Shown: piece after piece, positions 2,439 through 27,700 of the stretch | Position numbering within the stretch: the first letter of the stretch is position 1 | Layout of the letters: each line of letters begins with the position of its first letter | Source of the DNA: Ramazzottius varieornatus | Lineage: Eukaryota > Animalia > Tardigrada | Reading direction: 5' to 3' | Assembly: GCA_001949185.1 (NCBI GenBank) | Contig: BDGG01000002.1 | Span: 8,541,990-8,605,989 of the forward strand | DNA length: 64,000 nt | The notes under the pieces: generated by a model | Database searches by the model: none | The model's input: only the letters and a program-made list of their open reading frames with translations | Told to the model about the DNA's origin: nothing | Translations under genes and position numbers: made by a program

Positions 2439-3624
2439 GTGTTTTTCGGATTGTTCGGGAAACGAGTTGATCCAAGCTTGCTAGTAAACACGTGTCCTGC
2501 ATCTGTCCGCACAGACGGAAAGTCATCGTATGGGGGGACGAGTGGTGGAATGGGTGGAGTGACAGGCGGGATAGTCAACACAGCGATGCCGACCGCCGCC
2601 AAGGACATTTCCGTCCTGAATTACGCCCTGACTCTGGAGAACCTGGAAGCCACCTTCTACGTCCAAGCTCTGCAAAACTGCCCCAAAGAGCAGTTCTTGG
2701 CCGCAGGCTTGTCTGAGCGAGACTAAACTATCATTTCGGAGGTTCGCGACCACGAAGTCACCCACGTCAACTTCCTCAAGACGGCCATCTCGGCGCTGGG
2801 TGCCAGCCCAGTCCCACCTTGCACTTATAATTTCCCCGATACTGATGTCAAGTCCTTCTTGGCTATCGCCCGAGCTCTGGAAAAGAAAAAGACCGGTGTC
2901 AGCGCTTACATCGGCGATGCCCCCATGATTAGCATTCTTTAACTACATCACAGGTAAACCACCACCACTGTTGCCTTTCCCTGAAAAAAAGAGAGCGCGT
3001 CAGCCCAACTCGACAAAATCATCGCCTCAAGTGGCGCACGTCGCAGCTAGGAATATCAATTACGTGCGCCAGTGCAGAAGGCAACATTATCAGCTTTTCC
3101 AAGTGGCGCAGTCTTCCAGCCACCAACAGTACCAGCCTGCGCCGCTTGGAAGAAAATCTCGCGGCGTTGCTGTGCACAGCTCTTGATACATTTTATTCGG
3201 TGTAGGAAAGGCGCCGATTCCCGCGGCTTTCGATATTCCCCTGGGTATGCGCAGTGTAGTGTCCATCGCTGCTGGCTTTATCGTCAACTGTCCCTACGCC
3301 TTGCCCAAAGTCTTTCCTAGCTCGACCATTTCACCCGCGACACCGACAGCGGGGAGGCAGTTGAGCGTCACCTACAACGGCAGCAGTGCCGCAGATGCTT
3401 GCGTCTTCTTGGCCGGTGCCGGCAACAAAGTGGCACCCATCAGTGGAGGCAAATACACAGTGCCCGCCGATCTGCAAGGAGATATTTATGTCGTCATCGC
3501 CAAGGTGTCCAATGCGGCGGATCTGAACGACGACAATACCGTAGCAGGTCCTGCGGCCTACACAACCCCGGACAAGGCCGACACCGCCTTATTTCCATCT
3601 GGTCTAATTCGCCGCTGGCGATGA
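2439..3624 (+). pseudogene. Ferritin-like (Ferritin_2 / fungal Rds1-type, desiccation-related-protein-like) pseudogene
   Basis: DISVLNYALTLENLEATFY...DHEVTHVNFL...CTYNFP...ALE(KK)KTGVSAYIG...PAAFDIPL...VSIAAGFIVNCP...LNDDNTVAGPA match the Rds1-type pattern. Lesions: TAA 2724-2726, 6-bp duplication near 2880-2891, frameshift/TAA near 2940, TGA 3184-3186. One intron from about 2954. 5' start not identified. Confidence 0.8.
3026..3150. repeat. Intronic fixed-spacer inverted-repeat array, 2 units
   Basis: GTGGCGCA at 3031 and 3103, each followed after 26/27 nt by TGCGCC(A/G). Confidence 0.85.
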
Positions 3625-4350
3625 CCCTTGTGAACATTTCGTAGTTGTTGTCTCGTTAAGCTGGGTGACCATCTGTAGTCTTTCCTGAGTACTCAGCGTC
3701 ACTTCGACCGCAGAGATATACTGTACTCTTGTTGCGCTGCTGCCAATACTCGCACATGCTTCCTGCTTGTTTTCTACACACAACTCGGCTGTAAAAAACA
3801 AGCAAGCCCGTTGATCTTTCCTTGGCTGATTAAAAAAAAGGAGGAAACGTCCTGCTTGTGGTAGATTTGGTAGTTGTATAGCGTAATAGAACGAAAGTGT
3901 AAAAGATCATAGAACCAGCTGTAGGTTCCGGCCATACAGCTTACGTCTTTCAAGTGGCCGACGACACCGCCGAAGGCGGCGATAGTCCGCAGGTCGACAA
4001 ACGTACGCCTGCCCGTTCACTACCATGCTTACTGATTACGACGTCGCAGCAGAATATGGCTCTTTTTCCACAGCAGTCGGCTATAACTATAATCTTCAAA
4101 AATGTCACCAAAGAATGATTTACGATATCTCTGGATAATCATGATGTGAGTGACAGCACGCGTAATGGCAAGTATTATGATCCATTGTTCGCATCACGAG
4201 GACGGCGATCGTTTTGCAAAACTCTTGGGGCATTCTGCAGAATAGATATCTCGTTTACATTGTAATGAAAAAGAAGCTTGTATTAATACAAAATTACCGT
4301 TTCTCGGCGCTTGGTCAGTCCTGACTTTTTTCTTTTTGCCATAAACCATA

Positions 4351-5677
4351 ATGGTGATAATTGCTACTGTAGGCCTGTTGGGTCTTGCCGCCCTGACGGT
4401 GGCGGTTCTTCCCGATGGATACGAACTGCTAACTGCCAAAAAGAAGCAGGATATTTTGTGGACAAAAATGACGACCAACCCGCACGACCCTAACAACCTG
4501 CCAACCGGCAACGCAACAACTCGGACAATTGAGGAAACCTTGTTGAACGTGACGTTTCTGACGCTGTCGTTCGACCAAGCCGGCGACGAGATGGCACCCG
4601 GACGACCCAAAGTAGTATCGCCCCGTGGTCTTGTTGGCAAAGCTGAAGTGATCATGGACCAGACTGCGGCCAACCCATACACGGGAGTCTACAAGACTGG
4701 AGGCCTGGCAGTCATACGATTGGGTGGAAACCCCGGTCCTATCCTTCAAAACTTCTTTGCGCTAAAGGTAAACTACAAAGCCGGCAAACGAAACGTACCA
4801 GACTATCATCTCAAGCGACGCACGCTCACAGCCTTCAAAACTGGGAACGTGCGCCACTTGGAACACTAGTCTTGCCGAGATTTCCAAGTGGCGCACGCTT
4901 CTGGCCAGCATCAGCGGAGGCGTGCGCCACCTGAGACGACGCTCTGGTGCTTGTCGTTTGCCGACCTCCCAACCACCTTCACCCATAAAACTTCGACATC
5001 TGGTCAAAAACCATTGTCAAATTACACTTCTTTAGATCCTGATTGATGGGAAGCACTCGCAAAACTTCCACGCTGAGCACGATGTGATCGGTCGGATGGA
5101 TCCGGTCGTCGACTATTTTGAAGACGACGTTCTGGCACAATACGCTGCAGTTGACCCACCTCCATTTTCCGTGGGTTTCGCAGTCGTGTCCGCCTTCAAC
5201 GCCACCATCAACTCACTACCTGGCGGCCCACTGGATCGTCCGCCTAACGCTTTTGGTCTGGGTGGGGTTGAACAGGCGCGTGTTCGCAAGGATGGCCGCC
5301 TGGAGTACCAGGTCTACGCTCCGCACAACCTCCTTTTCCGTCCCGCTCCGTACCTGCACGCCCCCGTCAACTTGGCCCGCGGCGAAGATTACCGCAAGGT
5401 GCTGCTTGCGACGGTCAAGGACAACATGCTCTTGTACACCATCGAAGCCAAACGAACACCCTGCGATCCCTTCGTCAAGATCGGCGAAGTGTGGACCCGC
5501 AGCAAGCTGGTGTCGTCGCCCTTCGGCGATCAGGGAATCCGCTTCGGCCAGCCATACAGACAGTGGGATTATAGCTTTGCCTCACCTGGTCCTTCCTGCA
5601 CTCTGGACCCCAACATTCCGCCCGCCTCCACTCCTCGGCCAGGGCAGATCGATGACTTTGCCAATCCAGCCGGATAA
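4351..5677 (+). CDS. Secreted catalase-like-fold protein of an uncharacterised family (353 aa, 2 exons)
   Basis: Signal peptide MVIIATVGLLGLAALTVA. Exon 1 4351-4767, exon 2 5036-5677 in frame. Motifs SFDQAGDEM..GRPKVVSPRG.VGK, PYTGVYKTG...IRL, ALKILIDG..SQN, KIGEV...S....S.FGDQGIRF resemble small catalase-superfamily proteins. Confidence 0.65.
4811..4935. repeat. Intronic fixed-spacer inverted-repeat array, 2 units
   Basis: CAAGCGACGCA-27nt-TGCGCCACTTGG and CCAAGTGGCGCA-27nt-TGCGCCACCTG, period 73 bp, inside intron 4768-5035. Confidence 0.85.
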
Positions 5678-6210
5678 CCACTCAGCGCGAACACGCCTCT
5701 CCGGGCGCCCATAAGCTTTGTACTATAACTGTTTTTATATTTTTTGAGTCGTACTGAAAAATCCAGAGTGTTCTTGTGACAGACACATGCTGTACGTAAG
5801 TATTAAATCTCATATAAAAAAAAACCTTTACCGTTGCCATAGTCATGCTATAACTTGTGATACCTTGCTTGAAGAAAGTGATTCGTTTGGGGGCATGGTC
5901 GTGGTAAGCTACCGAACTTGAACCACCCAAATATGGCTCTTAAGTTACATAAGTCAGATTACAATCGGCGATGCCGGCCGCAAGGTGGCACTTGGTGTCA
6001 ACGAAACGAATGGGGTCGATTGCCTTGTTCCATAGAGCTCAGTAGATCGATTCACATTCCTGAGCCCAAGAAACAGCAAAGAAGCGGTATGCAGCAGCTT
6101 CAATCAATGTCACTGAAGGCAGGATTCGATACTGAAATGGCCCACCTGATTTGTCAAGTTTGTTTCTGCCTCATGAATGCGTATACCAGCGAGCTGAGCC
6201 AATTTCGGTG

Positions 6211-6397
6211 CACGTGCGACGAATTATGAGACAGTAAAAACTATGGGACAGACATTATCGCTATGGCGGTACGGAAGCACGCACACGGTTGATTTTCTCT
6301 AATAAACCTTTCGATGCTTCTCTACGCTTGATTTTCCATTTTGGCGTCCTTTCCGCCTGTCCCATAATTTTCACTGTCCCATTTCTCGTCGTACGTG
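6211..6397. mobile_element. MITE family A copy (about 190 bp)
   Basis: Degenerate TIRs with AATTATGGGAC repeats; internal ctatggcggtacggaa shared with copies at 28033, 32010 and 42927. Confidence 0.7.
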
Positions 6398-6962
6398 TAG
6401 TGGTCATAAGGCCTCGCTCCGCTCGGCCTTTTACAGGTGTCAGAACGGCTTTTACATTTCGAAAATGCGACACCGGGATCAGGAGATGTGAGCAGTGGGC
6501 AAAATAATTCAGGTGTCACATGGTAAAATTCTCTCTTGTTGAGAGATTGCAGGCACGCTCAGGTTTGGCTGCTGTGACGTTAATGCTACCATATTTCATT
6601 GGTCATAATCGGCTCCGCCACTACAGATGAGGAAAGACCCAGGCTCGCGCGCCATGTCTCAGCTTGAGGGAATTTTACCGCGCGACACCTGAGTTACTTT
6701 GCCCACTGCTGGTACAGCATGTGGAACGAACGAAAAGTATGGGTGACGACGAGTCGATGACCTATGACACTGACCGTATACAATATATAGCATGTCCCCC
6801 GGCCATTTCAAAAAGTAAATTTTCCATGATACGTGCATCGAAAGGTGTTCTGTGCATGGTTTCAACCAGCCATGCATAAGAACGGCGAGGCTGACGTCTC
6901 ATCAGCTGTTTTGACCAGATGAGCTGCAAGAGATCTGGCAAATCATTGAAGTATCCACCACC

Positions 6963-9043
6963 ATGATGTCTTTACCATGGGTTCTTGTCATCGTTTTGCT
7001 CTTTTGGTATCGTTTTCGCTCGTACTTTCGTTGCATGTTAGAGCGCCGTAGCGGACGTTTGCCGCCGGGACCATGGGCCTGGCCATTGTTTGGTACAATC
7101 CTCACCATCGACCGGCGACATCCCCAAAAGACGTTGCGGAAATGGGCAGCCACCTACGGAACTATCTTTAGCTTCTACCTCGGAGAAAGGTTTTGTGTGG
7201 CTGCCAGTGATATGCCCACCATTCGGCGGTTGATGAAAGACAAGCGCTTCGAGAATCGCTGCCATGCCGGCATGATCATGCATTTGGACGGCCAATTCGA
7301 TAAAAGTAAGAACGACGTCAGTATTTTCAGATTCCAAGACTGGAATCAACCATGTTGTCACGAGGATGAATTTCAAACAGGCATCATCATGGGGAATGGG
7401 GAAATATGGAGAGAACATCGTCGATTTTCAATGGCAGCTTTAAGAGACTTCGGTATAGCTTCATGATTTTCTTCCTCATTATTCTCTCCTCTGTCATTGT
7501 ACGCCAAGAATGTTGACTTACGTACCGCGCATTTCGTTGCGACAGGTTTCAGTAAAGCTGGTGGGGAAGAGCAGGTCCAGAATGAAGCGGCGCTGCTGGT
7601 GGCTGAGTTTCAGGGACACCAAGGCCGAAGCTTCGACCCGAAAATTTCCATAGCCACCTCTGGTACTTACACATCCTCGTACGTCTGCCGGTTTTGTCTG
7701 GACGTTCGTCATCTATTAGGAGATTCGACCTGGAAGTTGTAATGTATTTTGCAGTGGCTAACGTCATCTCGTACATGTTGTTCAGCGATGGCTTCGACTG
7801 CTCGGACCCTCGATTCCGACAGTACGAGGAAACCGTAGCTGCCAACATAGCCGAGCTGTCCAGCGGAACGCCTTTGGAAATCTTCCCGTGGCTGCGCTTC
7901 ATCCACCCCTTCTCCGTACAGTTCAACCGGATACAGAGGCGCTTTAAATATTGTCAGCGACCCATGATGGACTTGATCCAAGAGCACAAGAAGTCCTTCG
8001 ACCCAAACTCCCCACGCGACTACGTCGACGCCTTTCTGTGCGTGCAAGAAGGACGAAGAAGAACGGAAGACAGCGTTGGCACTTACACCGATGAGCAGCT
8101 TATGCGAAACCTGGGCGATCTGTATGTTGGTATGTCACCATAGCCAGACAAATAGAAGCATGGAGCTCAGAAGTGGATGGGCTTAAATCGAAGCTGGTCA
8201 AACGAGTTGAACCAGACCATGTTGCCAAGTGGCGCACACTGTCAGGCAATAACAATACAGTCGTGCGCCATTTGAGATACGATCTCGGTGAGTTTGTTGG
8301 CCAACGTCCCATACAGTGCGTCGTGTCTCTTCGCTAGCCGGCTTTGAAACCACGACGACGTTTCTTCGATGGGCTTTAATCTACCTGATACTGCATCCAC
8401 GAGTACAAGCAAAACTCCAAGGTGAAATAGACGTGGTTATCGGTTCTTCGCGAGCGCCGACGATGACAGACAAAGCGCCAATGGTCTACACGGAAGCGGT
8501 TATCCTCGAAGTCTTCCGCCTGTCGGATTTCCTGCCTTTCCTCATACCGCACTGTGCGACCGAGGATGTACAGATCGATGGCTATGTCATTCCTGAGGGC
8601 ACAGAAATTTGGCCATTGGTAACGTATCACTACTGCAATGCCAAGGTATGGGGAGACCCGCAAGTCTTCCGACCGGAGCGCTTTCTGGATGACAAGGACC
8701 AGTTGCTACAAAGTCTGGCAGATGAAATACAACCTTACTCTACTGGTGAGTAGGCGCATAAAAGATGGCTTAAGTTCACTCAAGCGTCCCCACAACAACC
8801 CTTTTCTCGGTAGGGCGGCGAGCTTGCTTGGGGGAGCCACTAGCCAAAATGGAAGTCTTCATACTTCTGACGACCATACTGCAGCACTTCACCATCTCTA
8901 GCCAGACAACACCTGATACGGAACACCTTCCAGCTTTTAGTACGTTCCTCGACCGCTTAGGCTCTACAGAAGGCTTACTTGAAATTTTCGTCGGTTCATT
9001 GTGCAAAGTGTATCTTCGCAGTTCTGGCACCACCCTCATTTGA
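6963..9043 (+). CDS. Cytochrome P450, clan 2 (CYP2-like), 6 exons
   Basis: N-terminal TM, PPGP, WREHRRF, AGFETT (I-helix), EVFR (ExxR), PERF and YSTGRRACLG (heme Cys). Exons about 6963-7305, 7381-7453, 7546-7662, 7755-8130, 8338-8746, 8814-9043. Confidence 0.93.
8225..8275. repeat. Intronic fixed-spacer inverted-repeat unit
   Basis: CCAAGTGGCGCA-27nt-TGCGCCATTTG in CYP intron 4. Confidence 0.85.
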
Positions 9044-10652
9044 GATTATCGCCACTCCCAGAACTTAATGACGACTGTACACCAGACTTGGCCGGAACAT
9101 TTTTTCAAGGTGGGATATACCGCGTGTGGCCGGAAGTTTCCAACTGACAGTGTTGCATACGAGGTAACCAACATGGGGATTACAAGTCGAAAATTCCGGC
9201 GTGATGATAGGTCTCGATCTTAGCTTTCCTTGTTTGAAACTCGTCTTTCTTGGTGTCCAAATTAGGAAACCTTGTTCCCATTCTTTAAAGACCATTAGGG
9301 GGCAAAACAGGATTCAAACTGGTGAGATGTTAGCCTTGTAAGGGAGAGGGGTGTCGCTCAATGTTAAAAAGCCTATGAGCTGTACGAGGAGCAAGGCCTA
9401 ACTTTTCTAACTCGCCAAACTGGTTCCTACTATCGGTCCTGAAATTCCAAATTATGATAATTCACAAGTATCTCCCATAACCCTGCTTCATTCTGCTCCA
9501 GACAGAAGTGGGAAACATTGGAAAATCACGACGAGAGAAATTCTAGAGAGGATGGCATCCGATATTAGGGAGCACTCTTTCTGTAGAGGGCAGAACAAGC
9601 CATGCCAGGTAAATCACGAATGTGTCGGACCGAGCCGAATTACACATGTCTCAAAGTGTGCCCAGGGTTAATGGTAACGCAACAGAGCCATTTTTATCCA
9701 AAATCGGAACGGCTACAACTTTGCTAACTTCCGAGCAAAAACACATTGCTTTGACAGATTCTCTTCGGTGGCGCATGACGTAACCGGAAGAAGCTGAGAA
9801 AGCGACGGTTGTTTGGGTGGAAATGGCTCTCTAGAGCCAGTCTTTTCTCCCCATCTTTCGTTTCCAGAATTAGGAACGCGGTTCTGGCTACAACTTTCAA
9901 CTGGAAGTGGCGAAATCGGTCCACGCTGCGTGAAGATATGTCGATATCCATAACTGTTGGCAAACCGTGCAGAATTTCTGTGATGGACTTGCCGATAACT
10001 GAATCAAGGCCTAAACTGAACTGTGAATGCTAACTGGCTGAAACTTTGCTAACTTCTGCTCAGCCGCCAGCTGGTCGTAGTCTAGATTCGCAGTGGGCAG
10101 CGCTATCTTCAGAATTTGGTTTGGTAAAGTAAGCTCGTTAGAAAAGTTGGGCCTCCCTCCTCGTACTAAGATCAGATAATCAAGCATGAAAAAGAAAGTT
10201 GGGCTGTAATCTCCACGCCGGAATTTCCGAATTGTACTCTCCATGCCGGCTACTTTGTACCTGCTACCTCGTACCGGAAGTTGTCTTGAGCAAGGAAACA
10301 AGTCGTAGTTGTTGTTATGTTTCCACTAATCCATATAGATTCTCGGCAGTCATTGTCGGCGGCACACATGAATTAGTGGAAACATAACAACCGCCACTTG
10401 TTTTCTTGCTCAAGGCAACTTTTGACTACATTGTTCGATTGGCCGAAAAGATTTTTCCCCATACGTTGGCCGCTGCTTCTTCCGATAGCAAGTCTCTTCA
10501 GAAGACCTATCTTCAGTGTTTCCATGCTTTTTCGTTGCCCACATAGAAGCGCTGTCCGACCTGCATACAGTGTTGTTTCCTAACGTGGCTTTTTTGACTC
10601 TTTCGACTTCGCCGTCTTTATTTATTATATCTTACTGGAGGAGCACTACAGG

Positions 10653-11033
10653 ATGAACATGTATCTGCCACTGGCTCTCGTCCTTGTCGGGGTTGTCTTG
10701 GTTCAAGCTCAGCCCTTGGGTTTTGGTATACCATTCAGCCAGCAGAGCAACCGCTTCAGCAACAACTTTGGTCAGCAGTTTAACAACGCAGCCGGCAATG
10801 CAGCCGGTGCGGGACAGGCCCAGGCCGGCGGACTGGGCTCCTCGGCCAGCATCAACCAGGCCAACCACGTAGCCGACCGTTTCCGGACTGCCTCCCAAGG
10901 TCTCAGTGCCAACACCGCACAAGGCACCATGGGATCGCAGGCTGGTGGTGCCGCACAAGCCGGTGGACAAATCCAAGGCGGACAACGATTCCAGTCCAAC
11001 ATGGGATCGCAAAACTTCTTCCAGCAAGGTTGA
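10653..11033 (+). CDS. Small secreted Gln/Gly/Asn/Ala-rich low-complexity protein (126 aa)
   Basis: Signal peptide MNMYLPLALVLVGVVLVQA; mature region polar, nearly uncharged, with spaced Phe; single exon. Confidence 0.75.
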   Translation: MNMYLPLALVLVGVVLVQAQPLGFGIPFSQQSNRFSNNFGQQFNNAAGNAAGAGQAQAGGLGSSASINQANHVADRFRTASQGLSANTAQGTMGSQAGGAAQAGGQIQGGQRFQSNMGSQNFFQQG

Positions 11034-11187
11034 ACGGAGCGAGAAAACGCCAACTTGGCAAGCTAGTACAAAGTCTTTTAACAGCCCTCCTATCATGTCG
11101 GTGTACGTTCCACTAATACTTGTGTACCGAATACCCGAAACATTAATATTGATCTATTCGATTCTGTTTATTGTACCTCTTACTGTA

Positions 11188-11342
11188 TGCGCGCCGGACC
11201 CGACTAGCGGCCTTGGCAAAACTTCCGGCCACCGGGCCGAAAACGACAGCTGCCAGCTAAAGCGTCCAATCAACCTAAGCGCTGCCGCTTTCGGCCGGTG
11301 GCCGGAAGTTTTGTCCAGGCCGGTAGTCGGGTCAGGCGAGTG
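11188..11342. mobile_element. Foldback MITE with about 60-bp TIRs
   Basis: gacccgactagcggccttggcaaaacttccggccacc is mirrored by ggtggccggaagttttgtccaggccggtagtcgggtc; TA on both flanks. Confidence 0.75.
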
Positions 11343-11478
11343 TACGTGTGATTGTTCCGGCTCATAAAGCAGCAAACAGACACCTAGGATCATGGTTCTC
11401 TTCTGGACCTTCTTTGACGTTGTATAGCAAAGAACAACAGCTAAATGTTATCGATGAGCCGCTGCACTACCAGCGGAG

Positions 11479-12188
11479 TTAGCGTGTCCCCGGGACGAAG
11501 ATCCATTTGCCGCTGTTAACGTTGGCATCACTTCGTTGACTGGGTTGAGCGTTAAGCCTGCTATTGCTGGCTCCGTTGTTCTGGACGACGTAGTCAGCCG
11601 GAGGAGTGTCTGTCAATGTTACATCATTCAGCCCAGTAATCAGGAATTTTTCACCGGAAGGCCTCGAAGATCACTTACCGAACAATGGTTGGTCAGTGTA
11701 CAAACGCGAGTTGGCAAAGTTGGCAAACTCTTGCGAGCGAGCGCAGTCCACGTTGTACCTAAATAGCCGGTCCATATCTCAGTTTATGCGTTTGGGCTGT
11801 TGTAAGTACAGTCCAAGAGAGATCGGTGGACGTACCAGTAGTCACAAACCAGGGTGAGCTGGTTGAAGACGGTGGTGTTGACGCAGAGGTAGGTAGTCTG
11901 GTTGCCATTGATGTCACATCGATGGAAGACTTGGCAGTTGGTGGCGGTGTCGGCGTAGTAACCGGCTTGGGCCTGGCTGGCGCAGCTGAAGGCAGTCTCG
12001 GGCAGCGCGTCGCGATCGTAGGTGGGGTAGCTGGCGTCGCGCGAGGAGAGGATGCTTTCCACTTCGGCGGCAGTCAGAGCAGGCTTCAGCAGGTCGAAGA
12101 CGTAGCGCCCACCAACCTGGTTGACCTTGTTGTTGCGCTGGCACATGGCCGACCCAACGACTACAAAGAGAACGGCGAGGACCTGCAT
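11479..12188 (-). CDS. Secreted chitin-binding type-2 (CBM14/peritrophin-A, CPAP1-like) protein, 3 exons
   Basis: Signal peptide, then PETAFSC...GYYADTATNCQVFHRC...YLCVNTTVFNQLTLVCDYWYNVDC (6 Cys). Spliced tail NSRLYTDQPLFDTPPADY ends at TAA 11479-11481. Confidence 0.88.
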
Positions 12189-12576
12189 GGTGAGGAGCGT
12201 TGGCTGGCTGGCTGGCTTCCACGGGATCCAAGAGCGGACGAAAGTTGATCAACTAAAATGCTCGCTATATATCTATAGAGGGTTGCGGTGACTTTATATA
12301 GTTTACCGCGTTCCTGTCCTGAGGGCGGAATAAGATTAATTGGACGTCCAAGTGGCTGGTCCGGTTATTAACAGTTGCGAAATCTACACTCGGGAAGGAT
12401 GACTAAGTCCATCAACTTTGTCAACTTGAACTGGAGCCTACTTTGTCACGAGTGTGCTAGACAGAAGAGGTCTGCGTTCCCGGTAGTACGTCCCTTCCAG
12501 CACTATATTCATCAATCGACTCGGGGATCGGTAAGGGAAAGGAGTTCGCACCAGGAAGCTGGCACATTAATCAGTA

Positions 12577-12698
12577 CTGTAATGCTTCTTGAATCTCACG
12601 CACTTACGTCACACCCCCTGTGCACTATATAAGTCACTACAACCGTAAAAGTGGCGCGCATGGTGACGTCAGTGCGTGAGATTCAAGAAGCATTACAG
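12577..12698. mobile_element. MITE with CTGTA termini (122 bp)
   Basis: Near-perfect TIR CTGTAATGCTTCTTGAATCTCACGCACT...AGTGCGTGAGATTCAAGAAGCATTACAG, TA target-site duplication. Confidence 0.85.
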
Positions 12699-12702
12699 TA
12701 TG

Positions 12703-13661: not shown

Positions 13662-16600
13662 TCAGGAAGATGAGCTGTGGTCAACATAGGCCTGCGCTTC
13701 GCGTCTGACATGCTCTACCGTAGCCGCCGAACCGTTCTTCTCCTCAAACTCTAGATATCTCCTGAAGAATATCTTCATCTTCTTGGCCGGCAACTTCATG
13801 TGAATAATTTTCTCGAACAATTTCCTACAAAGAAGCCCCCGCATGTGTCGACATTCTCGGCAACGAACTTGCGGACAAGACCGGTCAGAAGTTAGACTGA
13901 CCGTATATCGGAAGTGGGTTGGTTGGCCTTGATCATCTGGCTGAGGTAGACGTGGAGAAGGTCCGTCCTCTTAGGGTAACTGGCCACTAAGTTTTCAAAC
14001 ATAGTGCGCGCTCGTTCGCGGGAACCATACTGCAGTTCCAGTAAGGCGAACTTGACAATGATATCCGTTTCTAGACACAAAATAAAATTGAAAATAATTC
14101 AGAAAGTTCCCAGAATTTTACGAAGATTTCACTTCTCCTAAAAAATTTCCAGCAGGCATTGTGTCGTCCAGACTTACGGGTTTTAGGGTCTACCGTCTGT
14201 ATGGCTCTCTGCATCAGCTGGTGGGCTTCCTCCGTCTCCTTCCTCATCATCAGGAAGCCGCCATAGTCCATCCACACTTCCTTCACTGTTTTGAACTTAT
14301 GCGTCATCTTCTTGTACAACGCTTCCGCTTTCTGAATTCAAGACAGAAACCCGCGTCATCCCAAAGGCAAAACTCTGCGATGATTTCAACAAGGTCAAAC
14401 CTTACCTCATGTTTGCCGGTGTTTGTATAAATGGCAGCCATTTGGCGGTGAATCTTGACGGCGTCGTTGTGCTGTATGGCACTCTGGAAGGCTCTGTCCA
14501 GATTCTCTTCCGTCCCTTGCAGGTTCTCCAAATTCAACAAGGCTATCCACACATTGTAGCGCTCCGTTTCTTCCCTAAACCAAACCCCATAGACTATCAA
14601 CCCGGGGCAAAATTGAACGACTCAATACCAAGACCTCGGCAAACAAGCTCGGCAAGATCCTTGTGCCAAGTGGCGCACACTCTCCTCCAGTAACCCTGGA
14701 GACATGCGCCACTTGGGGCGATAACCTCGTTGAGTTGCCCGCGTGGCGCATGCTTGCAGCGAATAACACTGAAAAGGTGCGCCAAGTGGGAAAAAAGCTT
14801 CTCAAGTTTGTTTGTACAGCTCTACAGTTACACTTTTTCAGTCGAACTGTCCTGACATACCGGAAGGAGATGGTGTTGAGAGCTTTCTGAGCAATGTTTC
14901 TTGCGTCCTGCACTTTGCCATTCTGCAGCAGGAAGGCCATGTACTGAATCCACGGCATGGACTTGTTGGGCTGCGTCAACACCAGCTTCTCAAAGTCATC
15001 TTCCGTTTCCAAACCCGACTCTTCCTTCACCGTACTCCGTTCCTTCTACAACCCAAACATACCACTTACCATTTTTCATTCAGTTTCATACTAGCATCCG
15101 AGAAAAGCTTACATCATAAATTTGCCTTTCTTGTTGTCGAAGTTCCTTCCGACTATTCCGCCGTCCCTCATCTTCCCCTCCTTCTTCCGCCGCAACTTCC
15201 ACCACCAAGTCGTCTGCATCATCGACCTTTTGCTCTTCCTCATTCCAAGAGAAACTGTCAGGTAGCGACAGACGTGGTAGCAGGCTTGTCAAGGTCACCA
15301 CATTCTCACTTCCGGTCGTCTTACTCCCACTCGGTACCGTCTGTCCGGAAGCATCTTCCACCTTAATTTCCACCACGTCTTTTTCGTGCTTCACCGGAGA
15401 AGTTTTCAAAGCTTTCTGTAACGCGTCGGCATCTCTAGCAGTCAGAACGGAGGTGCGCATAGAGAAGATGTACAGTGGCGCCTTGCTGGCTACCTTTTTG
15501 GTCAGGACTCTTCGGCCCTGCCCTTTACTGGGCTTAACCTCCTTCTGACCGATCACTCGAACACTGACTACCTGTCCAACGTGGTAGGAAGTCAAGTCAG
15601 CCTTCTTGCTCTTAACGTCGTCCGCCAACTCGGACTTGTGGACGTGTCCGACCATCTTGGCCGGCGTCCGGACTTTTAACCGCTGGGATTCTACCGCGAC
15701 TATCTTGGCAGTGACGACGTCCCCAAAGGCATGGGCACCTTTCTTCTGTTCTTTCTTGGATAGTTTCTTGGGCTTCCCGTTGTCTCTTGACATGCTGTCG
15801 GCTTCTACGACCTGAAAAGAAAAACGGTTCGTGTTGATCATCCGCCTACATACATACTACTCACGCAAACTACGACAGTGCCAGTATGCATGTGCGGATA
15901 CATCCGCGCACTCTCGCCGCGCAGATAAACGCACGCCAAACTGTCTGCTTAGGCTGAGCACATCGCGCGTTAAAGACGCACTGCATACAGGCTTGTGAGT
16001 GAAGACCGGTGTGCGCAATGCACACTCACCTCATTTTCTTCCATCGGTTCGGCCTTGATATCGTCAACGCGATTTAGGAAGCGAAAAAGCAACTTCTGCT
16101 GTTGCTCATTGACTTCCTCCACTTTGACCAGCACAGTGTCTCCCACTTCAAGTCCTTGTTCTCCGGCGCTGAGAGGATTGAGCCTATTGGGCACCAGTCC
16201 TCCAAGGCTATTAGCGACCTCGACGAAGAGGCCATAATTCTTGACGTTGTTCACCGTGGCTACCACCTCCCTACCCACGTGCATTTCTCGCATGGAGCTG
16301 GGCAAGTCATGCTGAGCAGCCGCTTCGATGTACGCAGGCTTCACCGACAGAACCAGCGGTGTCATTTTTAGAATGACAGCCCGAGGTATGACTTCGTTCA
16401 GTTGCAACATGGCCAGAACGTTAGGACAGTCGCGGGCTTTGTCGGCTAACTGGAGAAAAGGGATGAACCCGGGAACTTCGGCCGGGAGAACCCTGACTTC
16501 GAGGCCTTTCGGAGTAATCTTGGCCACTCGACAGGACATTATCGCGGCAACTTCGGAAGACTCCTGAAAACACAGGTAAAACACAGCTGCTTGGCCCAAA

Positions 16601-19600
16601 AGCTTTCACAGGACTACAGTTGGGGGGTCAGCAAACGAAACGTAAAGTTCGGAATCGCAAATGGCCCAGACTCTTAGCAGATAACCCAGTAAACGTGCGC
16701 CCCTTTGGACACTGACAAGACAGCTCATCGAAGTGGCGCACGTAACCGGACAGTAACACTGAAAAGATGCGCCGCTTCGGAAACCCAATCTTGTCGTCCT
16801 TCCCCAAGTGGCGCACCATTTCGATATATTGGCTGGGAGAGTGCGCCAATTGGGAAAACAATTCTGCACGTTTCGTCTTGCGGCCTGCCGTGTTGCGCTT
16901 GCTTACTCGTTTGATAGATTCTGGATCGGATTTGATGAGACGTAACGACAGCTGCAAGTTTTCCGTCTTCTGGTCACAGCGCAGGACTTTGCACTTGACA
17001 GTCTGGCCTTCATAGTACAAGTTCTCCAGGCTGATGCCTTGGACAAACTCGGTCATCGGCACCCAGCCATACACTCGCTGGAAGAAGCGCACCAGCATGC
17101 CCGTGTTGCGAATTTTGCTGATAACACCCGTGACTATCCTGTCCGTCTGGGCTTCTTCGTAGGACTTTAGGACGGGGTCTTTGGCGTCCAGCAGGCTCTT
17201 CTTGTGGGTTAACACCAACGACTTCTTCTCCGGTTCCAGCTCCATCACCTTGCACGATATCAGTGTACCTTCGGGGAACTTGGCTTGCCAGTTCTTTAGA
17301 GCCACTTCCGTGAGATGCATCGAAGGCACAAAACCTGAGACCATACATCATACATCAGTTTAGCGCTTTCACCGATGCGACATCATCTCGATACAAAAAC
17401 GCGACCATTCGTGATACAAATTTGTATCCAGGTTTGGAACAATCGAGAACCTGACTATAAATCCACGTTCTGCGCGCCGCCTAACGACATGCAGGTACGC
17501 GACCGTTTTTCTCAACTTCAAAATTTTCAACGCATATATTCAAAGAAGTCAGCTTGATTTCTTTGAAAGACCGCTGGTCTTTCTCTCACCTTGGATCCGA
17601 TCGCCGATTCGAACCACGACGCCACTTGGTACTCGACCGATAACTTTGCATTCGACGGCCTGCCCGATATGGAGATCTTGATAGGACAGGAAAGGCTGGT
17701 TGACCAGGTTCTCTTTTAAGCTGACCAGTACAATTTCGTCCATGTCGTTGAAGCCAGTCACGACACATTTGTGAACTGAGCCCACTTTGAAATGCGGTTT
17801 GATGTTGTCGGATGGTGGAATGCTCATATTCTTGCGGGAAGTAAACGCTACTCGATCGTTGCTCAGCTTCAGGTAGACACCAACCTAAAACCGTATTAAT
17901 CAGAGAAAGGATCCGTCAGACGTGGAACGTAACGGCCGACCTTTTCCACCACCGACATGACCTCAGCGCTTTCGACGACGAGGCCTTCATACAGATCGCC
18001 ATGCGAGACGACGTTCCAAGACTTGGTGTCCCAGAAGGTGCTCTTTAAGGTGAAGGCAGTCTGTTTCGTCACGGGGTTCGTGTACAAGACTCTGGCAGAA
18101 ATCCTTTCGCCTTCTTTGTGGTCTGCGATGGACTGCGATGGGCTGATCAAGTGAAAGCGTGAAACGTAACCCTATGGAATGACATTGACATGATAGAAAC
18201 ATAACATCCAAAATAACAACCAGATTTAAAAAATGGCGCACGGTCTCAGTCGACAACACGGGAAGCATGCGATAGTTATAAACCATCTCGACGGGTCTAT
18301 TTTTCTATCCAAGTGGCGCACACTTTCGTCTATTGTCATTGAAAATGTGCGAAATAGACAGACTCGACAGAATGGATTTAGAAGTGGCGAACGTATCTCC
18401 CTTTTTCTGTGGGAGCGTGCGCCGCTTGGGAAAGCGATTTTATCGAGTCTGATTACCGATGTCCCATTTCTTCACACCTGAACGGAACCGCACTCCACCC
18501 GAAGTCCCACGTTCGACACACTCCGGACAACAACATCGACGATAGCACCTGCGAGTAAAACTTTGTATAGGTTCAAAACTAGACGACAATTTTTCACTTC
18601 CGGTCGCTGAGTTTACCTGGTAGGAGATTCACCGGGCTGATGTTCTTGGGCGTGAACTTGACGGCCGCGATGTTCCGCGTCAGCTGCGGCGCCCGCACCA
18701 CCGTGGTCTTGTTATTCAAGCCACCAGACTCGACAGCGCAGATCAAGACCTGTCCTTCGGCCATGATGGGCGCGTTGTCTTCACCGTCTAACACGGCCCT
18801 GGCCTTGGGAAGAAAAGCCTTGATGCCCTTGCTCTCCATGCCGACGTCCATGACGTAGCCATACTCTTCCACACTGCTGATAGCAGCGGGCATGACCACA
18901 CCGTTAAAGATGTGGGATGCCATGTCGGGAACGATATCTTTGGGGTTCATGGTCAAGCGAACAGTCACACGCTGCTTAGCGGGGTTGGCGGCGTTGTGCG
19001 ACGTCTCCACCTCTTTCACCTTACAAATCACCATTTGACCTGACGGAAACAGCTGGAGTAGGCTCTGAATCTGCCAAGGTAGAAAAACCACCACGTTGAG
19101 ATCCATGTGTATGCAGGTGCGCGACACTCGGGTGACATATCTGATTTACCACGAACGTCCGCGCATTACATCAAAGTGAATACATTATGTAATGGAGTAC
19201 GTGACACAACAGTGACAAACGTGACGTCATTCGCTGGTTGGCGGAGATCTTCGAGACTGTATCGTTTACGAAGTTATACGGACATACCTCCTTATCTTCC
19301 CTCTTGACACCCAGTCCCAAACCATGCAGCCGTGCTCCAAAGGCGTCCGACACGTCGAAAGGGCTAACAAAGCCACGAAGACCACCAGGTAGAGTCACCG
19401 CGATTTCCGAGCCCAGAAACTCTTTGATGCGTCCCAACAGAAGCAATCCCGGTGTCAGCGTCTATAACAAATTTTACACGTGAATGACAACTGACTCTTA
19501 TGATACTGGATAGGTAAAAAACCGTGTAGGTTAGGTGTTCGATGATCCTATCCTCTTCTCGAACGAGTTTGGCTGGTTGTGGTCGATTCTTCTTCCGGAG

Positions 19601-19861: not shown

Positions 19862-20427
19862 TCTGTCCTACGAAAACATTCAACGATAAACGGACTCGCC
19901 GGAAGGATTGCAGTGTTCTTCAGGGAGGTCGAAAGCTAGAAATTTTCGGATGTGGAAACCACTGCGAATTAAATCAGATTTATCAGAAGTTCCGGGCGAT
20001 GTCGACCGATCAAGTCAAATTCTGTTGGTTGATTGTGATTACCCTGGATCGCCTCTTCTTCCCCGTTTCGCAATGCCTTGACGTCAGAACGTGCCAGGCG
20101 ATTGGGTGGTCCGCCGATGAGTAAGTGTAGCTCCGCCCCAACAGCTGATCGGGTCGTTTATCCGATGCTGCAGTTGCGCATGCATTCCAAGCATCCGTAA
20201 GTACCACCCAAGAGGACAGATGGTCCGCTCATGATACATCCGGGGCATAAGATACGATGAGCTGTAGCAAAGCCACGTTTCCTTCAGGGAATCCGCTTCT
20301 CTGTGGATATCGCCATTCGCCACTGTTCTGTTTTCCAGCATATCAGAGACTGGTCGTCCATATTCTGCCTTTCTCACCGAACGGTTTGGTACTTCCAAGT
20401 GTTAAGAGCAAGGAAGAACGTCCAGCC
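19862..20427. promoter_or_regulatory. Probable bidirectional promoter between RRP5 and ACP6
   Basis: Divergent start codons at 19861(-) and 20428(+), 566 bp apart. Confidence 0.55.
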
Positions 20428-22662
20428 ATGTGGAAATGGAAGAGCATCGGAGCACTGGGGACGTTTGCCGGGTCGACTTACTTCGTGGCGGACAGCCGGC
20501 TTGTCCATGCCAAGTCATCGCCGGAACAGGCTGACTACATCAGCATGCCTCCTGGGATGACCACTCGCACCCATCTGCAGCCTGCCTTCGACACTCATGG
20601 TGCTATCCGCGGAGAAGGAATGGCCAGGCCAGAGCTGGCAGAGATGCAGCTGCGACACGTCCAAGTGTTCTTTCGCCATGGCGCGCGCACGCCGCTGAGA
20701 ATTCTTACATGGATGGACCAGGTATCTATCTCATCTGTTTTGTTTCTCTCAACTTGCTGAAACATCTGGAAGTGTCTGAAATTACTTGGAAATGTTATTG
20801 TAGCCGGAATGGCCGAAAGATAAAATATTAGGCGACCCACCACTGCCAGCTGTCACGTACACGACCACCGACGTTCATGGCCAACTTGTACCAAGTGGAC
20901 CGTATGAAGCAATGTATCAAAAGATTATCTTCAAGGTAAGGATGCTCTTCTTCGCTCTTGCCTGATGACGCAGAGATGAGGTTTGTAGGGCGGAACTCCT
21001 GCTGGACAATTAACCAAAACCGGTAAGAAAATTCGTCGGCACTTTCTGGTGTTTTGTGTCCTCGATGGTGGGCTAATGTTTACCGTAATTCTTGACGTAA
21101 TCTACGGTGGTCTTTTTTAGGAAAGGAGCAGGTTTACGAACTCGGCCGAAGAATAAGGGGAGACTACATTGAGAAGCGTCACTTGATCGCACCAACTTTC
21201 AATGCTTCGGAAGTGTAGTAAGTTACAGTAGAAGATTTGTTCTTGCTAGTTTTGTTTGCTCAATGGATTTAGCCATCTGATACTTCAGCGTGCGTTCCAC
21301 AAACATGATGCGAACAATCGAGTCAGCACGATGGCTTCTCAGCGGAATTTTCGGCCACAATAAGCGCGGAGGTAAGACCGGAAGTACTTGAGCATACCAG
21401 TTGCAAATAATCATGACTTTTATCAAGAGTTCGTATGCTATAGATAAAATTATAATCCATACGGAACCTGCCGAAAGGGAGATCCTGTACCCCAACCACA
21501 GCTTCTGCCGCCAGCTCAAGCTCTTTAACAAGAAACTCTTCAAAGAACTGGACGCAAGTATTCCTGGACTGCGAGAAGACCGCGCACAACTCCAGCGCCT
21601 TCTCGGTACACCTTTGCTGACTCAACATTCTTCTGCTCGTCTTTCGTTCCTCGTCTGTCCGCTTCATTTCTCTTTCAGAATACAGCGAGGAGGCTAACAA
21701 CAAGCAGAAGCTAAATTACGTGGATCTCCGAGACGAAATCATTGCACGTCAGGTAAAATATTTCTACGAGTATCGATTAATGAAATAAGTAGTCAATCAA
21801 TGAAATTAGGCGAGCAGTCCATTTCCTGGTGTTGATCCAGTGTGACGTTATGCGGTAATGTCATATGCGAGTGATCGACATCCGGTCGACGTCATAGGTG
21901 CCCACTACTTGATGGCTGATTTGAGGGTTTGTTGCAGGCGCACGGTATCACCGTTCCTGAGAAAGCCCTGACGATGATGAACTCGATCGAACTCTACGCC
22001 GTCCGCATGTTGACTTCCATGGTCTCAGGTTCGGGCAGGAAGATCCGCAAGGAGATTCTGCGGCTGGCCTGCGGTCCGGTGATCCATATGATCCGCGACA
22101 ACATGGACATGAGTCTTCGCAATGACGGCTTCTACAAGCTGAACCTGTATGCTTGCCATGACTCGACCCTCATGGCGCTTCTGGTGACGTTTGGCATCTT
22201 CGACGGCAAATGGCCTCCCTTCGCCGCCGACTTGGTCTTTGAAACGTATGAAGACAAGTATGGCGATGCCTGGGTCCGAGTCATGTATCTGGGTGATGTC
22301 CAGAAATTATCTAACGCAGAGACTGACGAAGTCATTTCCATGGATAGTTTCAAGGCTCTGATCGGCACTTATGCCGTCAGTCCCGATGTAAGAACCAACT
22401 TGGAAACTCGGCGAAACACACTGCACTGAATAGTTTTCCCACGTGGCGCATTCCCTCAGCTAATACAACTGGAAAAACGCGCCAGTTGAGAAAGCCACCT
22501 CGTTGAGTTTGTTCGACGAGCTCCCTCTTTTTCCCTCCCACCATGTAATTCGTTTAACATCCTAGTGACTGATTCTTGTTTCTCTTTTTGCAGAAGTACA
22601 AGGAAGAATGCGAGGTGGAAGCAGATGACGGTGAAGTGGAAGGGAGAAGCCCTGGCTTGTGA
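20428..22662 (+). CDS. ACP6: Lysophosphatidic acid phosphatase type 6 (histidine acid phosphatase), multi-exon
   Basis: VQVFFRHGARTP catalytic motif, GQLTKTG, VRSTNMMRTIESA, LYACHDSTL, WPPFAADLVFE; N-terminal mitochondrial-type leader; stop 22660-22662. Confidence 0.9.
22438..22490. repeat. Intronic fixed-spacer inverted-repeat unit
   Basis: CCACGTGGCGCA-27nt-CGCGCCAGTTG in the last ACP6 intron. Confidence 0.75.
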
Positions 22663-23478: not shown

Positions 23479-23958
23479 ATGGGGCAGTCAACAATGGCGC
23501 TTTCGATTGGGCTTTGTTTGATCCTTACCATGGTCTCGTCAGCCGTGCTGAAGCCGGTGGAGCTCTCCAGAACGGACCTTCCAATGCCTCTTGACCCCCC
23601 GCCTGAGAAAGTCCGGTTCGGCGAGTCGGAAGCAGCGCTACTGCTGCGCTTGTTAAAGTATTACATGTCTGTCGGGGTTCCGTCAAAAGAGACCGCGAGT
23701 ATTCCCCCGAACGAAGCGGATGCAGCAGCCATACCTGAGAACCGAGAAGAAACGTGGACGGAAGTTAAACGACAACCGGGTTCGGACGGGTCTCGGAGAG
23801 GACCGTACACGCCACCTCTCGCTGACCGCCTGCTGGACCGCGCATGGGACCACTTCATCGTGGAGAAGGGCAAGCTGAAACGAAGAACCAACGGCAAACT
23901 CTGTTACATCAACCCCATCGCTTGCTTCGGCCGACGTCGGGAAACCGCAGCCAGCTAA
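23479..23958 (+). CDS. AstC: Allatostatin-C-family neuropeptide precursor
   Basis: Signal peptide, long propeptide, KRR-TNGKLCYINPIACF-GRRR; the C-x6-C-F pattern resembles AstC CYFNPISCF. Confidence 0.85.
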   Translation: MGQSTMALSIGLCLILTMVSSAVLKPVELSRTDLPMPLDPPPEKVRFGESEAALLLRLLKYYMSVGVPSKETASIPPNEADAAAIPENREETWTEVKRQPGSDGSRRGPYTPPLADRLLDRAWDHFIVEKGKLKRRTNGKLCYINPIACFGRRRETAAS

Positions 23959-24774
23959 AAAGAACCACCTGAAATTCTACTTAATAACTTGCATAGAAAG
24001 GACGAGCATCTTTCAGCTTAATTGACCTTGGACCTTCCTCGTCTTCACACTTATAGCTCAGCATCAGGGAACAGAACGTACCTGCTGAAAACTTTGACCC
24101 TCACTAATACTAAAGACATGCTGAATTGAAATTTCTCATTTTTCAAAATTATATGGCAATATGGTGGCTGGCGGTTGGTGGTATTAATGAAACGGCACAA
24201 TAAAGCTCGGTATTTGACCATACTGTACAATAGTCCTACTCACGACGAGCTGAGAAACCTGACTGATTGCGTTCATCTTGAAAACGGAGTACCAAACTTC
24301 ACTTTCAAGATAATAAGCCCTCGCGCAGCTTGTCCCGAATACCAAAACGGATTATTCTCTGCAAACTTCCCTGGCAATTTCAACTTTTCATTCCTCATCT
24401 GACTTTTGTTTCCACAGTGCATCACATCGCAAGATACCGTTTCTCACACGGGTTACTTGATACCTATCAGCGTCGAGAATATTGCAAAACAGAGAAGTCA
24501 GTAATTAAGTAAGTCCGGAGCTAAAGACTGCCTACAAACCTACTCCGAGAAACTCGCGCAATTAAATTTCATCTCACTCACGCTCGATTTGAGTTTATTA
24601 AACTGAAAAATATTTATGTGAGTGTTTTCATTATAAGCAGAGTTTTGAGGTCAGTGTCGTCAGCAGGACTAAATATGTTAGACAAGATAAAAAGTAATTA
24701 AATTGGAGTGGAGCAAACAAAGAGGAAGATAACATACTATGGAGCATATTAGGTCGTTTTATATATTTAGAAAT

Positions 24775-27700
24775 TTATCTGCGGATGTTCTCAAGCCATT
24801 TAACGATAGCGGCCAAGTTGCGTTTTCTCCAGCCGATGTTGGCGCGTGCCTTTTCGACGGCCTGACGGAAGGCTCGCTGACCTAGCGTCATTGTATCCTG
24901 GTTGTCAGTGATGAAGGTCTCCAGTTCTAGTAACTCGAAGGGGGTGTTGAAGGAACGTGTCAAGGCGTTGATAAGATGGCCCAGTCCTCCGATCACACCG
25001 GCGTACCTGCATCATCACTCGTCCATCAGGATAGACCAAGCGCTGTGTATAGCGGGAACCGTGACCAACCTTAGTCGTATTTCGTTCCAGCGTTCCCGGA
25101 AGAAGTTCCAAGCCAGATAGCGACCGACCGGGTTTTGAGCAATCAGCGACATGACCAAATCCCCATCCTGCTTTCGAATGTGAACGCTAGTTAGGGACCA
25201 TTCCAGTAACCTGCAAAGCAAAGGCGCTCCAAATCGTAGCTCACTCCGGTGTAACACAGAGAGAAGAGACAATTTCTGCTGGGTCTTGTACCGGTTGAGT
25301 ATCCAGGGTTCTCGTGAGCAAGTTAGAGATGTCAGGAATTGCCGCTTCTCACTGGTCGTTGTCGTCTTCTTGTACATTTCCCAGGCAAAGTCCCACTCTT
25401 CCGCGTTGCCATATCGTATGGCGTTACAGTATACAACCGACTTCAAATTTGGCGATATCCTGAAGATCGACAGACAGTCACCGTTGGAACCCTTTTCTCC
25501 TTTGAGAAAAGATGTCGTGTAAATACTACTTGTTCTGCTCTGGGTTGGACATCCATCGTGTGAAGATCAACTTTGCATTTTCCACGCAGTTATCGTGACC
25601 GTAATAACAGGCTGCTTGTAGGATTTCTACTCGCTGCAACCTGTTGGTAATTGGGATGATTATACAACATATTCTCGTACTTAAGTTCATTCAGCGACGC
25701 AGCAATAGTCATCTGGCGCTACCTACTGTTGGATGTGCGAGTCAGTCGAGCTGTCTCCCCAGCCCAGAATAATGTAGATGGGGCGTAGCTGGCGCAAGAT
25801 ATATGCCTGCAAAATAACAGAAGATGATTCGCTAGTTGGATGGCGGAGAGGTCGAGCTCGAGCTTGTCAAAGTAGTACCTTTAATAGCCCATAGTGTTCT
25901 GAACTCTGCAGCATGGCGTCGACAAATTCCAATGCTTTTAGGCAGGAAACCCATGGTAGAAAGTCCTGCTCGCCAATCAGGTACTCCGTTGTCGAGAAAG
26001 CGATGGCGTAGTCCAAATAGGCGGCACTGCAATGCGAAGCAATCTCACTGCTTCTGTCCGCCTCCTCATTAAGGAAAAAATCCCAGCTGTCACCGTACCG
26101 AGCCAGGGTCAATGCGTCGTTAACGATTTGGGCGCGGTTGATTACGTCGATTTTCATTCGGTCAGTATTCAGCTGCGTAATGAGAAGCTTCCAGTTGCGT
26201 TCGTCATAATTGACACGATAATATCCCGTCTGTCGAACGTTGACTAGAATCCATTCGTTTTGCGGAGAGAGCAATTCGTTGACCGTTTCTGTAATTATTT
26301 AACTTCTTTGTGAGCTGGACAAACGAAGTGATCACATGCCTTCAACCAAATGCAACGAAAGCGTGCGCCATTTAGGAAAACAAGTTCGCCAAAGATCGTT
26401 TTTCTATTCCAAGTGGCGCAGACTTCCAGCTAGTAACGTTGGGAACGTGCGCCACTCGCCCTACTTGGAAAGTTATTCCTCAGGTATGACGAATTTCAGG
26501 TTCAATTTGTCGGTACCTGCCTCTCCCTTGTGACAATGGTCCCTCCTGGGAGAGACTGGGCGTTTTTCAAACTTCAACAGACTAGACACCTCGGGTCTGG
26601 CTGACCGAACACGCCCGTTACACCTCGGTCTAAAGTGTCCTCATGAACAAGCTTAGAAGACATATGACAAAACTGAAGTACACTTTCGTCATTCCTGCGG
26701 GTGTTTAAAGCCTCTTTTCATAGAACTTTCTGACTAGGGTTGAATAAGGACATGGTTCAGTTCGTTTGCCTAACTTTCGTTTGGTTTCGTTCCGGTGTAT
26801 CTTACTATTTTCCTTGCTGAGCCACAGTTGTTTCGGTTTGTCATAGTTGCGATCGCTGGCCGTAATCATGGTCAAAGGGACATGCCATGCGAAGCCCGAC
26901 TCAGATCGTTCAGCCGATGATGCCGATGTTTCGGGCTCGATGAAGAAGTGCTGCTGGTAGACTCTGACGTTCTTGCTGCTGTAGTCTTGTGTGATGGTGA
27001 TGACGGGATAGCCCATCTGTAGGGTCCACGAGTCCATGACCATTTTAACGTCAATGTATTTGCCGTCTTGACGACCGGCTTCCGTCAGGTGACGCCACAA
27101 GTCGTCCTGTTCGGCGTTGCTGTAGGAGAAGGCCGTCAGGTAGCTCTTCAAGCCTTTCTTCAGAGTCTCTTCGCCCAGGAAATGCCGCATCATGCGAATT
27201 AACGAGCAACCCTGAAACGATCGCCAGACAGCCTGTAAAACACGGCAGAAGGATACGCTTTCTCCACAGCGAAAAAGAACGCACCTTGCCATAGGATATG
27301 CGGTCGAAGATTTCGCCAATCTCGTCTGGATGGTATACAGGCAGTTGGATGGCATGGGATGTGTTTAAAGCGTCCGATTCGAAAGTGTCATGGATATTCT
27401 CGATAACAAACATTTGCGACTATAGGGAAAATCCTTTTTGTGCTACAGCTGGACGAAGCTGGCCAAAGTGCGCTGCATTATTTCGAACGTACCATTTGCC
27501 AAGTGGGAAAGGCAAAGTCCACGCCGTGGTATTCTAGAAAGCTGGCAAAGCCCTCGTTGAGCCATAGAGTGTCCCACCATTTTGGTGTGACCAGGTTTCC
27601 GAACCACTATAACCAAGGCTTGTCAAAAAAAGAGAGCTGCTTGAAAATTCTGTGGCTGGATACAAAGCCAAGAGGTGAGGCAGGCTTTACCTGATGTGCC

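Follow-up and report, generated by a model that had tools for sequence, protein, structure and literature searches.

A 64,000-nucleotide stretch of the genome of the tardigrade Ramazzottius varieornatus (assembly GCA_001949185.1, contig BDGG01000002.1, positions 8,541,990 to 8,605,989 of the forward strand; the whole stretch is hereafter the window) carries a series of hairpin repeats, in which two short arms of opposite orientation flank a spacer of near-constant length. These hairpins are very probably decayed copies of one old, non-coding palindromic family of miniature inverted-repeat transposable elements (MITEs), which has already been catalogued for this species. The 43-nt unit of arm, 27-nt spacer (N27) and second arm is the centre of a larger palindromic MITE. 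When copies were aligned together with their flanks, both homology and palindromy extended for about 40 nt past each arm, and the consensus of 51-167 copies forms an almost perfect palindrome of 125-137 nt, with non-coding solo copies measuring 113-137 bp. A full copy begins with AWWT, the duplicated A/T-rich target, followed by the terminus GGGAGnTCGGCAAAC, a 17-nt module that varies between subfamilies, GATCGTTTTTCC and the first box, beyond which a 27-nt interior, comprising a short stem and a 9-nt loop, leads into the mirror image of the preceding parts. The two boxes (AAGTGGCGCA and TGCGCCACTT) each span 10 bp. Terminal inverted repeats (TIRs) are present as the termini GGGAGnTCGGCAAAC and GTTTGCCGAnCTCCC, and the entire element is an inverted repeat; folding of its consensus with DNA parameters gives -48 to -60 kcal/mol.

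The flanks carry a short duplication. Among 32 full copies, a 4-bp direct repeat of the flanks matches at 83/128 positions, compared to 60.7 +/- 4.2 in shuffles, with identical flanking 4-mers in 7/32 copies where 1.8 would be expected, while a far poorer fit is obtained with repeat lengths of 2, 3, 5 or 6 bp. An earlier note, made from the sequence of the window alone, had stated that the repeats possess neither a target-site duplication (TSD) nor shared outer termini; as defined termini and a 4-bp A/T-rich TSD were both found, this statement is false. At least four subfamilies can be distinguished by the variable module, each internally palindromic, and all of them share identical boxes and an identical interior while their outer modules differ palindromically. 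The subfamily differences in the variable module thus account for all significant covariation in the stem. Arrays with a period of 72-75 bp are elements in which the central 70-80 bp is present two or three times, and adjacent units in an array are 54 % alike, compared to 56 % for random pairs.

The family is represented in a published, curated library of tardigrade transposable elements (TEs; Peona et al. 2024, Mobile DNA 15:10, PMC11071193, supplementary file 3), where no other family is as abundant. The entries ramVar1-0 and ramVar1-16 (both DNA, 113 bp) and ramVar1-23 (DNA, 125 bp) are given with a TIR described as 'whole', and ramVar1-7 (DNA/Sola, 123 bp) with a 4-bp TSD and a 56-bp TIR. 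These four consensus sequences share the layout (T)GGGAGCT(C/G)GGCAAAC...AAGTGGCGCAC-25 nt-GTGCGCCACTT...GTTTGCC(C/G)AGCTCCC(A) and, when the entries as printed there were compared by eye rather than with an aligner, match our own consensus box for box over their full length, with the same termini, boxes and interior. On the basis of these entries, subfamily A corresponds to ramVar1-0, -16 and -23 and subfamily B to ramVar1-7; they are the same sequence as the window elements, with no difference in kind, and the box was found 57 times in the library file (PMC11071193). The earlier note had judged the repeat not to be a MITE and to belong to no described family, and had named a repeat-library match to a known transposon as a finding that would speak against it; the four ramVar1 consensus sequences contain the whole unit, TIR and TSD are present, and that judgement is not supported. 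In text searches of the article (PMC11071193), neither the family nor its accumulation in introns, its arrays or its slowly decaying boxes were found to be discussed; the article does state that the two tardigrade species have no TE family in common.

With the Sola superfamily and its MITEs the window family shares the 4-bp TSD, and one subfamily (ramVar1-7) is published as Sola. However, three of the four library entries are only unclassified 'DNA', no Sola transposase or autonomous partner has been linked to the window termini, and no autonomous Sola entry occurs in the portion of the library inspected (PMC11071193). A metagenome scan for the box pair yielded seven contigs, none of which fits the element profile. 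Two of the seven were read, one being GC-rich and the other holding an unrelated palindrome of ~200 bp with the same box pair (JAAUYB010018826.1, L021:1-200). Bacterial REP/BIME arrays resemble the family in architecture only, as short GC-rich palindromes arrayed in mixed orientation; they are bacterial and intergenic, whereas the window family occurs in the introns of spliced animal genes and bears TSDs, and REPs owe their mobility to RAYT enzymes and lack a 4-bp TSD. Membership of the REP/BIME group was thus rejected.

Within the window, the arm 8-mer (GTGGCGCA) occurs 22 times against 2.25 expected, and arm pairs with at most one mismatch have spacers of 26 nt (n = 3) or 27 nt (n = 7) and of no other length. 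Along a 200-kb stretch of the contig designated C1 the spacers are distributed as N27 (44), N26 (9), N28 (3) and all remaining lengths (4). The whole 55.8-Mb assembly contains 2,850 perfect arm pairs with spacers of N15-45, compared to none for a reversed control pattern, and 2,667/2,850 of these (94 %) have spacers of 26-27 nt. The fixed spacing of 26-27 nt reported in the earlier note is thereby borne out genome-wide, and the arms are better conserved (divergence of ~10 %) than the spacer (~30 %). Scaling the counts of perfect pairs and of perfect 10-mer boxes (9,740 genome-wide) by their share in sampled copies, the size of the family is estimated at ~9,000-12,000 units, or roughly 2 % of the genome. 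A search of the window with the element profile (nhmmer) recovered 16 units in eight clusters between 2991 and 26458, exactly the units that the earlier note had placed in eight introns and none additional, with the remainder of the 64 kb empty. The 37 kb from 27000 to 64000 hold no copies despite the presence of multi-exon genes, while all 16 units lie in the first 27 kb. Copies are also clustered elsewhere, as the 1.5-kb surroundings of 30 target copies contain 44 further units, and several large genes have one element in each intron; the family seems to prefer certain genes.

Outside the boxes, copies are ~33 % diverged from the consensus, with a spread slightly above binomial, and share a pairwise identity of ~54 %; overall copy divergence is ~21-33 %. 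Even for the most consensus-like copy, the best non-self matches genome-wide (40 candidates scored) are only 75-81 % identical, and the interior and inner flanks are nearly star-like. Judged by this pattern of divergence, the family is apparently old and no longer active. A transposase acting in trans would have moved the elements by cut-and-paste into AWWT sites, with the ~9,000-12,000 surviving units coming to lie mainly in formerly short introns of host genes, which often harbour more than one element. A self-folding insert is probably least harmful inside introns. After the burst, the copies would have decayed by ~21-33 % and close relatives would have been lost, while the fixed spacer would mostly have been inherited from a master copy.

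Each of the eight window clusters lies in an intron. In the wider sample, same-strand coding segments occur within 300 nt on both sides of 33 % of clusters but of only 9 % of random non-coding positions, and a splice-plus-coding score is passed by 72 % and 24 % of these, respectively, although this Markov and splice score was trained on the same 264 kb that it scored and is partly overfitted to the training stretch. As alternative coding proxies, codon-usage scoring was too insensitive and a stop-free-run statistic provided no discrimination.

Several points weigh against the reading of the hairpins as an old, dead MITE family housed in introns. In an independent genome-wide sample, 40 % of clusters pass the intron test, with 12 % in a reversed-sequence control, the split between intronic and intergenic copies beyond the window is based on our own crude coding and splice proxies, and some copies look non-intronic, such as one ~400 nt past the stop of a 460-codon open reading frame (ORF) in C1. 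Because the proxies are crude and such copies exist, the description of the family as intron-restricted in the earlier note is supported as enrichment but not as exclusivity. The Sola label derives only from the published curation of one subfamily and from the 4-bp TSD; no autonomous partner or transposase was identified for the GGGAGCTCGGCAAAC termini, no genome scan for long elements having been made. Finally, the slow decay of the two boxes is not predicted by the neutral decay of a dead MITE, and past selection for transposition is a poor fit to it, the termini being unconserved.

The boxes are 9-10 % diverged, against 27-33 % elsewhere in the element, even in copies found through their flanks alone. 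Under this ascertainment by flank profile, the 8-mer arms retain 89-90 % of consensus bases while the flanks used for the search retain 67-72 %. The same holds within subfamilies (boxes 9-12 % diverged, the rest 20-37 %), and base composition does not explain it. A measure independent of the consensus is available in the complementarity within each copy, since the two halves of each copy were once perfect complements. The pairs of the boxes (46-55/83-92) are complementary in 77-88 % of copies, compared to 54-62 % for the termini, the variable module and the inner flank taken as regions, and the conserved blocks are sharply bounded at pairs 45/46 and 55/56. Expressed as decay per half, this amounts to ~0.10 in the boxes against 0.21-0.27 elsewhere, with the termini at 0.21. 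The 27-nt spacer has the same level of substitution as the flanks, but only 0.26 indel events per copy compared with 0.62-0.77 in flanks of equal length. Thus spacer indels are ~2.5 times fewer than those of the flanks, and the boxes change at about one third of the rate seen in the remainder of the element, termini included. A query with an XRCC1 exon gave relatives at 87 % and 57 % identity.

The earlier note had read the unit as a selected geometry and proposed, among other candidates, a site for a dimeric DNA-binding protein. The first idea stands in so far as the boxes and their spacing are better kept than neutral decay predicts, and fails as regards a non-MITE identity. The second can still be entertained, because boxes and spacing have been kept better than the rest, with either a transposase or a host factor as the binder. 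Our best guess from the pattern of decay is that the boxes would form a paired protein-binding site on double-stranded DNA, and there is almost an even chance that constraint on them is still acting at the present locations of the copies.

A serious, if minority, possibility is that the conservation dates from past selection for transposition, in which case the boxes would be transposase-binding sites whose decay records the time since the last jump of each copy, while the rest of the element would record the full history of the family. Such a history would suit the subfamilies, with their common boxes and interior and their palindromically different outer modules. It would also suit box divergence that stays flat at ~10 % while non-box divergence ranges from 17 to 43 %, a test of low power because copy ages are nearly uniform. 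Likewise, the best matches to one copy share derived bases four times above expectation, a figure confounded by the selection of these matches for similarity. However, the termini, which a cut-and-paste enzyme would require, have decayed like the rest of the element (0.21 per half, against 0.10 in the boxes), copies are related in a nearly star-like fashion across the interior and inner flanks, identity to the closest relative never exceeds ~81 % and neighbouring units of an array are no more alike than random pairs.

It is a minority possibility of similar weight that the boxes were instead adopted after the burst by a DNA-binding protein of the host, such as a transposase-derived or THAP-like factor, and that purifying selection has maintained them in intronic copies by the thousand, which would be compatible with a MITE origin. 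The roughly threefold slower decay of the boxes relative to all else, including the termini, and their sharp 10-bp edges are consistent with such a role, as are the persistence of the box conservation under flank-only ascertainment and within subfamilies, the strand symmetry of the constraint and the scarcity of spacer indels. Furthermore, the number of box mismatches in a copy follows a unimodal distribution and averages 2.2 per 22 nt, although decay at ~0.21 per site would give ~4.6. A precedent comes from the CERP2/CELE2 MITEs of Caenorhabditis, in which HIM-17 binds m1m2 motif pairs that are better conserved than the adjacent sequence (Carelli et al. 2022, PMC9757741). As in the window family, these are abundant MITEs with a short motif pair at fixed spacing in inverted repeats; they differ in that protein binding, activity as promoters and conservation between species are documented for them, and in that co-option has turned copies into promoters (PMC9757741), whereas the window family has intronic copies and its conservation is read solely from decay within one genome. 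Against a host function, simultaneous selection on ~20,000 boxes would be demanding, the candidate binder is only hypothetical and the conservation is read from one genome, and box divergence does not climb with non-box divergence in the low-power comparison above. That a host protein, perhaps a transposase-derived one, still uses the two boxes with their 27-nt separation as a functional double binding site appears rather doubtful. An artefact or some other cause of the box conservation is unlikely.

The earlier note had also proposed an intronic RNA hairpin. It is very unlikely that the palindrome acts as RNA, whether by compacting the insert for the splicing of short introns or as a microRNA-like or mirtron precursor. 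The stability of the consensus hairpin (-48 to -60 kcal/mol with DNA parameters), the concentration of copies in introns and the recovery of element-bearing RNA contigs would agree with such a role, which would be independent of orientation because the palindrome reads alike on both strands. Against it, the copies show no bias in orientation relative to the inferred host strand (28 sense, 34 antisense). On the inferred transcript strand there is no excess of G.U over A.C pairs, either across all pairs (186 vs 187) or in the boxes (45 vs 43), most changes break pairs (683 pairs are broken and 270 have become G.T, whereas 166 are compensated, with compensation limited to the differences between subfamilies), and ~40 % of the pairs of the outer stem have been lost. 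What is conserved is the sequence of a 10-nt block rather than its pairing, and a search of the units against Rfam matched no family. Compensatory changes in the inner stem, suspected by eye, were discarded as not significant (5, 8 and 3, compared to 3.7, 8.7 and 4.4 expected).

Across 52 introns predicted with confidence, the median distance of the element is 43 nt to the donor (interquartile range 21-93 nt) and 66 nt to the acceptor (50-122 nt), and the intron without its element has a median length of 111 nt (77-211 nt). The variable distance to the splice sites and the random orientation of the copies point to insertion into pre-existing short introns and not to intron creation. It is accordingly hardly credible that these are introners, transposons that create their host introns: although both are strongly structured repeats that occur in introns by the hundreds or thousands, a single element makes up most of the intron between many long exons (for example at C1 offsets 72-79 kb and 115-126 kb) and the element in the cytochrome P450 intron abuts the acceptor, introners span the whole intron, carry or create splice sites and are expected to show an orientation bias, whereas here there is no such bias, the position within the intron varies widely (notably on the donor side), the intron sequence outside the element is dissimilar in three introns compared by eye, the leftover median of 111 nt falls between the two classes of element-free RRP5 intron (56-68 nt and 217-218 nt) and a literature search yielded no paper connecting introners to tardigrades. 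A fungal introner-like element, suggested by GTAAAC donors, was dropped as the host is a tardigrade and position and orientation vary.

Copies of the palindromic MITE in the window and their host introns
Feature	Position (units)	Strand	Host gene and intron	Basis
Two-unit array of palindromic MITE	2991..3187 (2991-3083, 3093-3187)	+	Ferritin_2/Rds1-like intron, + gene	Element-profile search
Two-unit array	4771..4974 (4771-4882, 4881-4974)	+	Intron 4768-5036, unnamed + gene	Profile search, intron score 17.1
Solo full-length copy, 133 bp	8183..8315	+	Cytochrome P450 intron, frame-consistent extent ~8130-8316	Profile search, manual frame check
Two-unit array	14630..14822	+	RRP5 intron 14575-14859, gene on - strand	Profile search
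Three-unit array	16617..16890 (16617-16711 +, 16713-16797 +, 16800-16890 -)	mixed	RRP5 intron ~16570-16905	Profile search
Three-unit array	18232..18471 (18232-18302 +, 18281-18351 +, 18356-18471 -)	mixed	RRP5 intron 18171-18476	Profile search
Solo full-length copy	22400..22531	+	His_Phos_2 (histidine acid phosphatase) intron, + gene	Profile search, intron score 12.8
Two decayed units	26335..26457 (26335-26401, 26392-26457)	+	M1 aminopeptidase gene (- strand), between Peptidase_M1 and ERAP1_C exons	

The host genes were identified by means of Pfam matches in the flanking exons. A Ferritin_2 match is found in exon 2439-2723, upstream of the first array, and the intron of this gene, delimited by reading the sequence, runs from a GTAAAC donor at 2954 to a tgtAG acceptor at ~3205. 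The ORFs flanking the second array have no Pfam match; the gene at 4351-5674, which the earlier note had called catalase-like, has no catalase match, the sole signal being PAP2_3, weakly matched by the ORF 5118-5711, and that name is not supported. The two ORFs on either side of the unit at 8229 match P450 profile positions 138-273 and 272-407. In this P450 intron the right end of the element and its 4-bp flank directly abut the frame-consistent acceptor (cccatacAG), and the element itself must thus supply the 3' splice-site region of the intron. His_Phos_2 is matched in exon 21929-22426, while Peptidase_M1 and ERAP1_C are matched at 26708-27355 and 25870-26274, respectively, on the - strand.

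Three of the arrays lie in RRP5, where RNA contigs help to define the introns. One contig ends at 14860, the end of an RRP5 exon, with overhanging letters (GTTTCTTC) equal to 14567-14574, and a HAT-repeat match occurs in an RRP5 exon near this array. On either side of the array at 16617..16890, RNA contigs break off at 16556 and begin again at 16928, the flanking exons encode S1 domains, and the intron has a GTAAGC donor and a ttttcAG acceptor on the - strand. RNA contigs from two runs show the third intron spliced out at a joint, 18170->18477 (CT..AC, which reads GT..AG on the - strand), and with this intron the three-unit array is removed. Element-bearing RRP5 introns are 285-336 nt long, compared to 56-68 nt or 217-218 nt for those that are element-free. 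The introns 15810-16027 and 19071-19287, which make up the 217-218 nt class, contain neither an element copy nor an inverted repeat, and their neighbours are 56-68 nt long. RNA contigs from other loci, at a depth of up to 179, overlap 14631-14694 and 18304-18438 through element copies of their own; because such contigs carry them, some element copies must reside in abundant transcripts or retained introns.

Two further small palindromic elements occur in the window. The element at 12575-12700 has 38-nt arms that are 97 % complementary, TA on both sides and a sub-threshold match to mir-3179, and its ends (CTGTAATGCTTC...GAAGCATTACAG) are similar to the library entry ramVar1-77 (DNA/TcMar). The 144-bp nested inverted repeat at 10278-10421, with 36-nt arms that are 86 % complementary, inner 24-nt arms that are 96 % complementary and a sub-threshold match to mir-643, is probably another MITE.

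The palindromic family described here explains much of the variation in intron length in a very compact animal genome, with element-bearing introns being three to five times as long as the adjacent short introns (56-68 nt). A sharply bounded pair of boxes that decays threefold more slowly than the termini of the same element is the signature that would be expected of a protein-binding site in use. If the boxes do serve a host protein in this way, ~10,000 intronic sites of a tardigrade chromatin or regulatory system not previously described would trace back to a dead MITE family, and selection would be keeping these sites while the copies around them decay.

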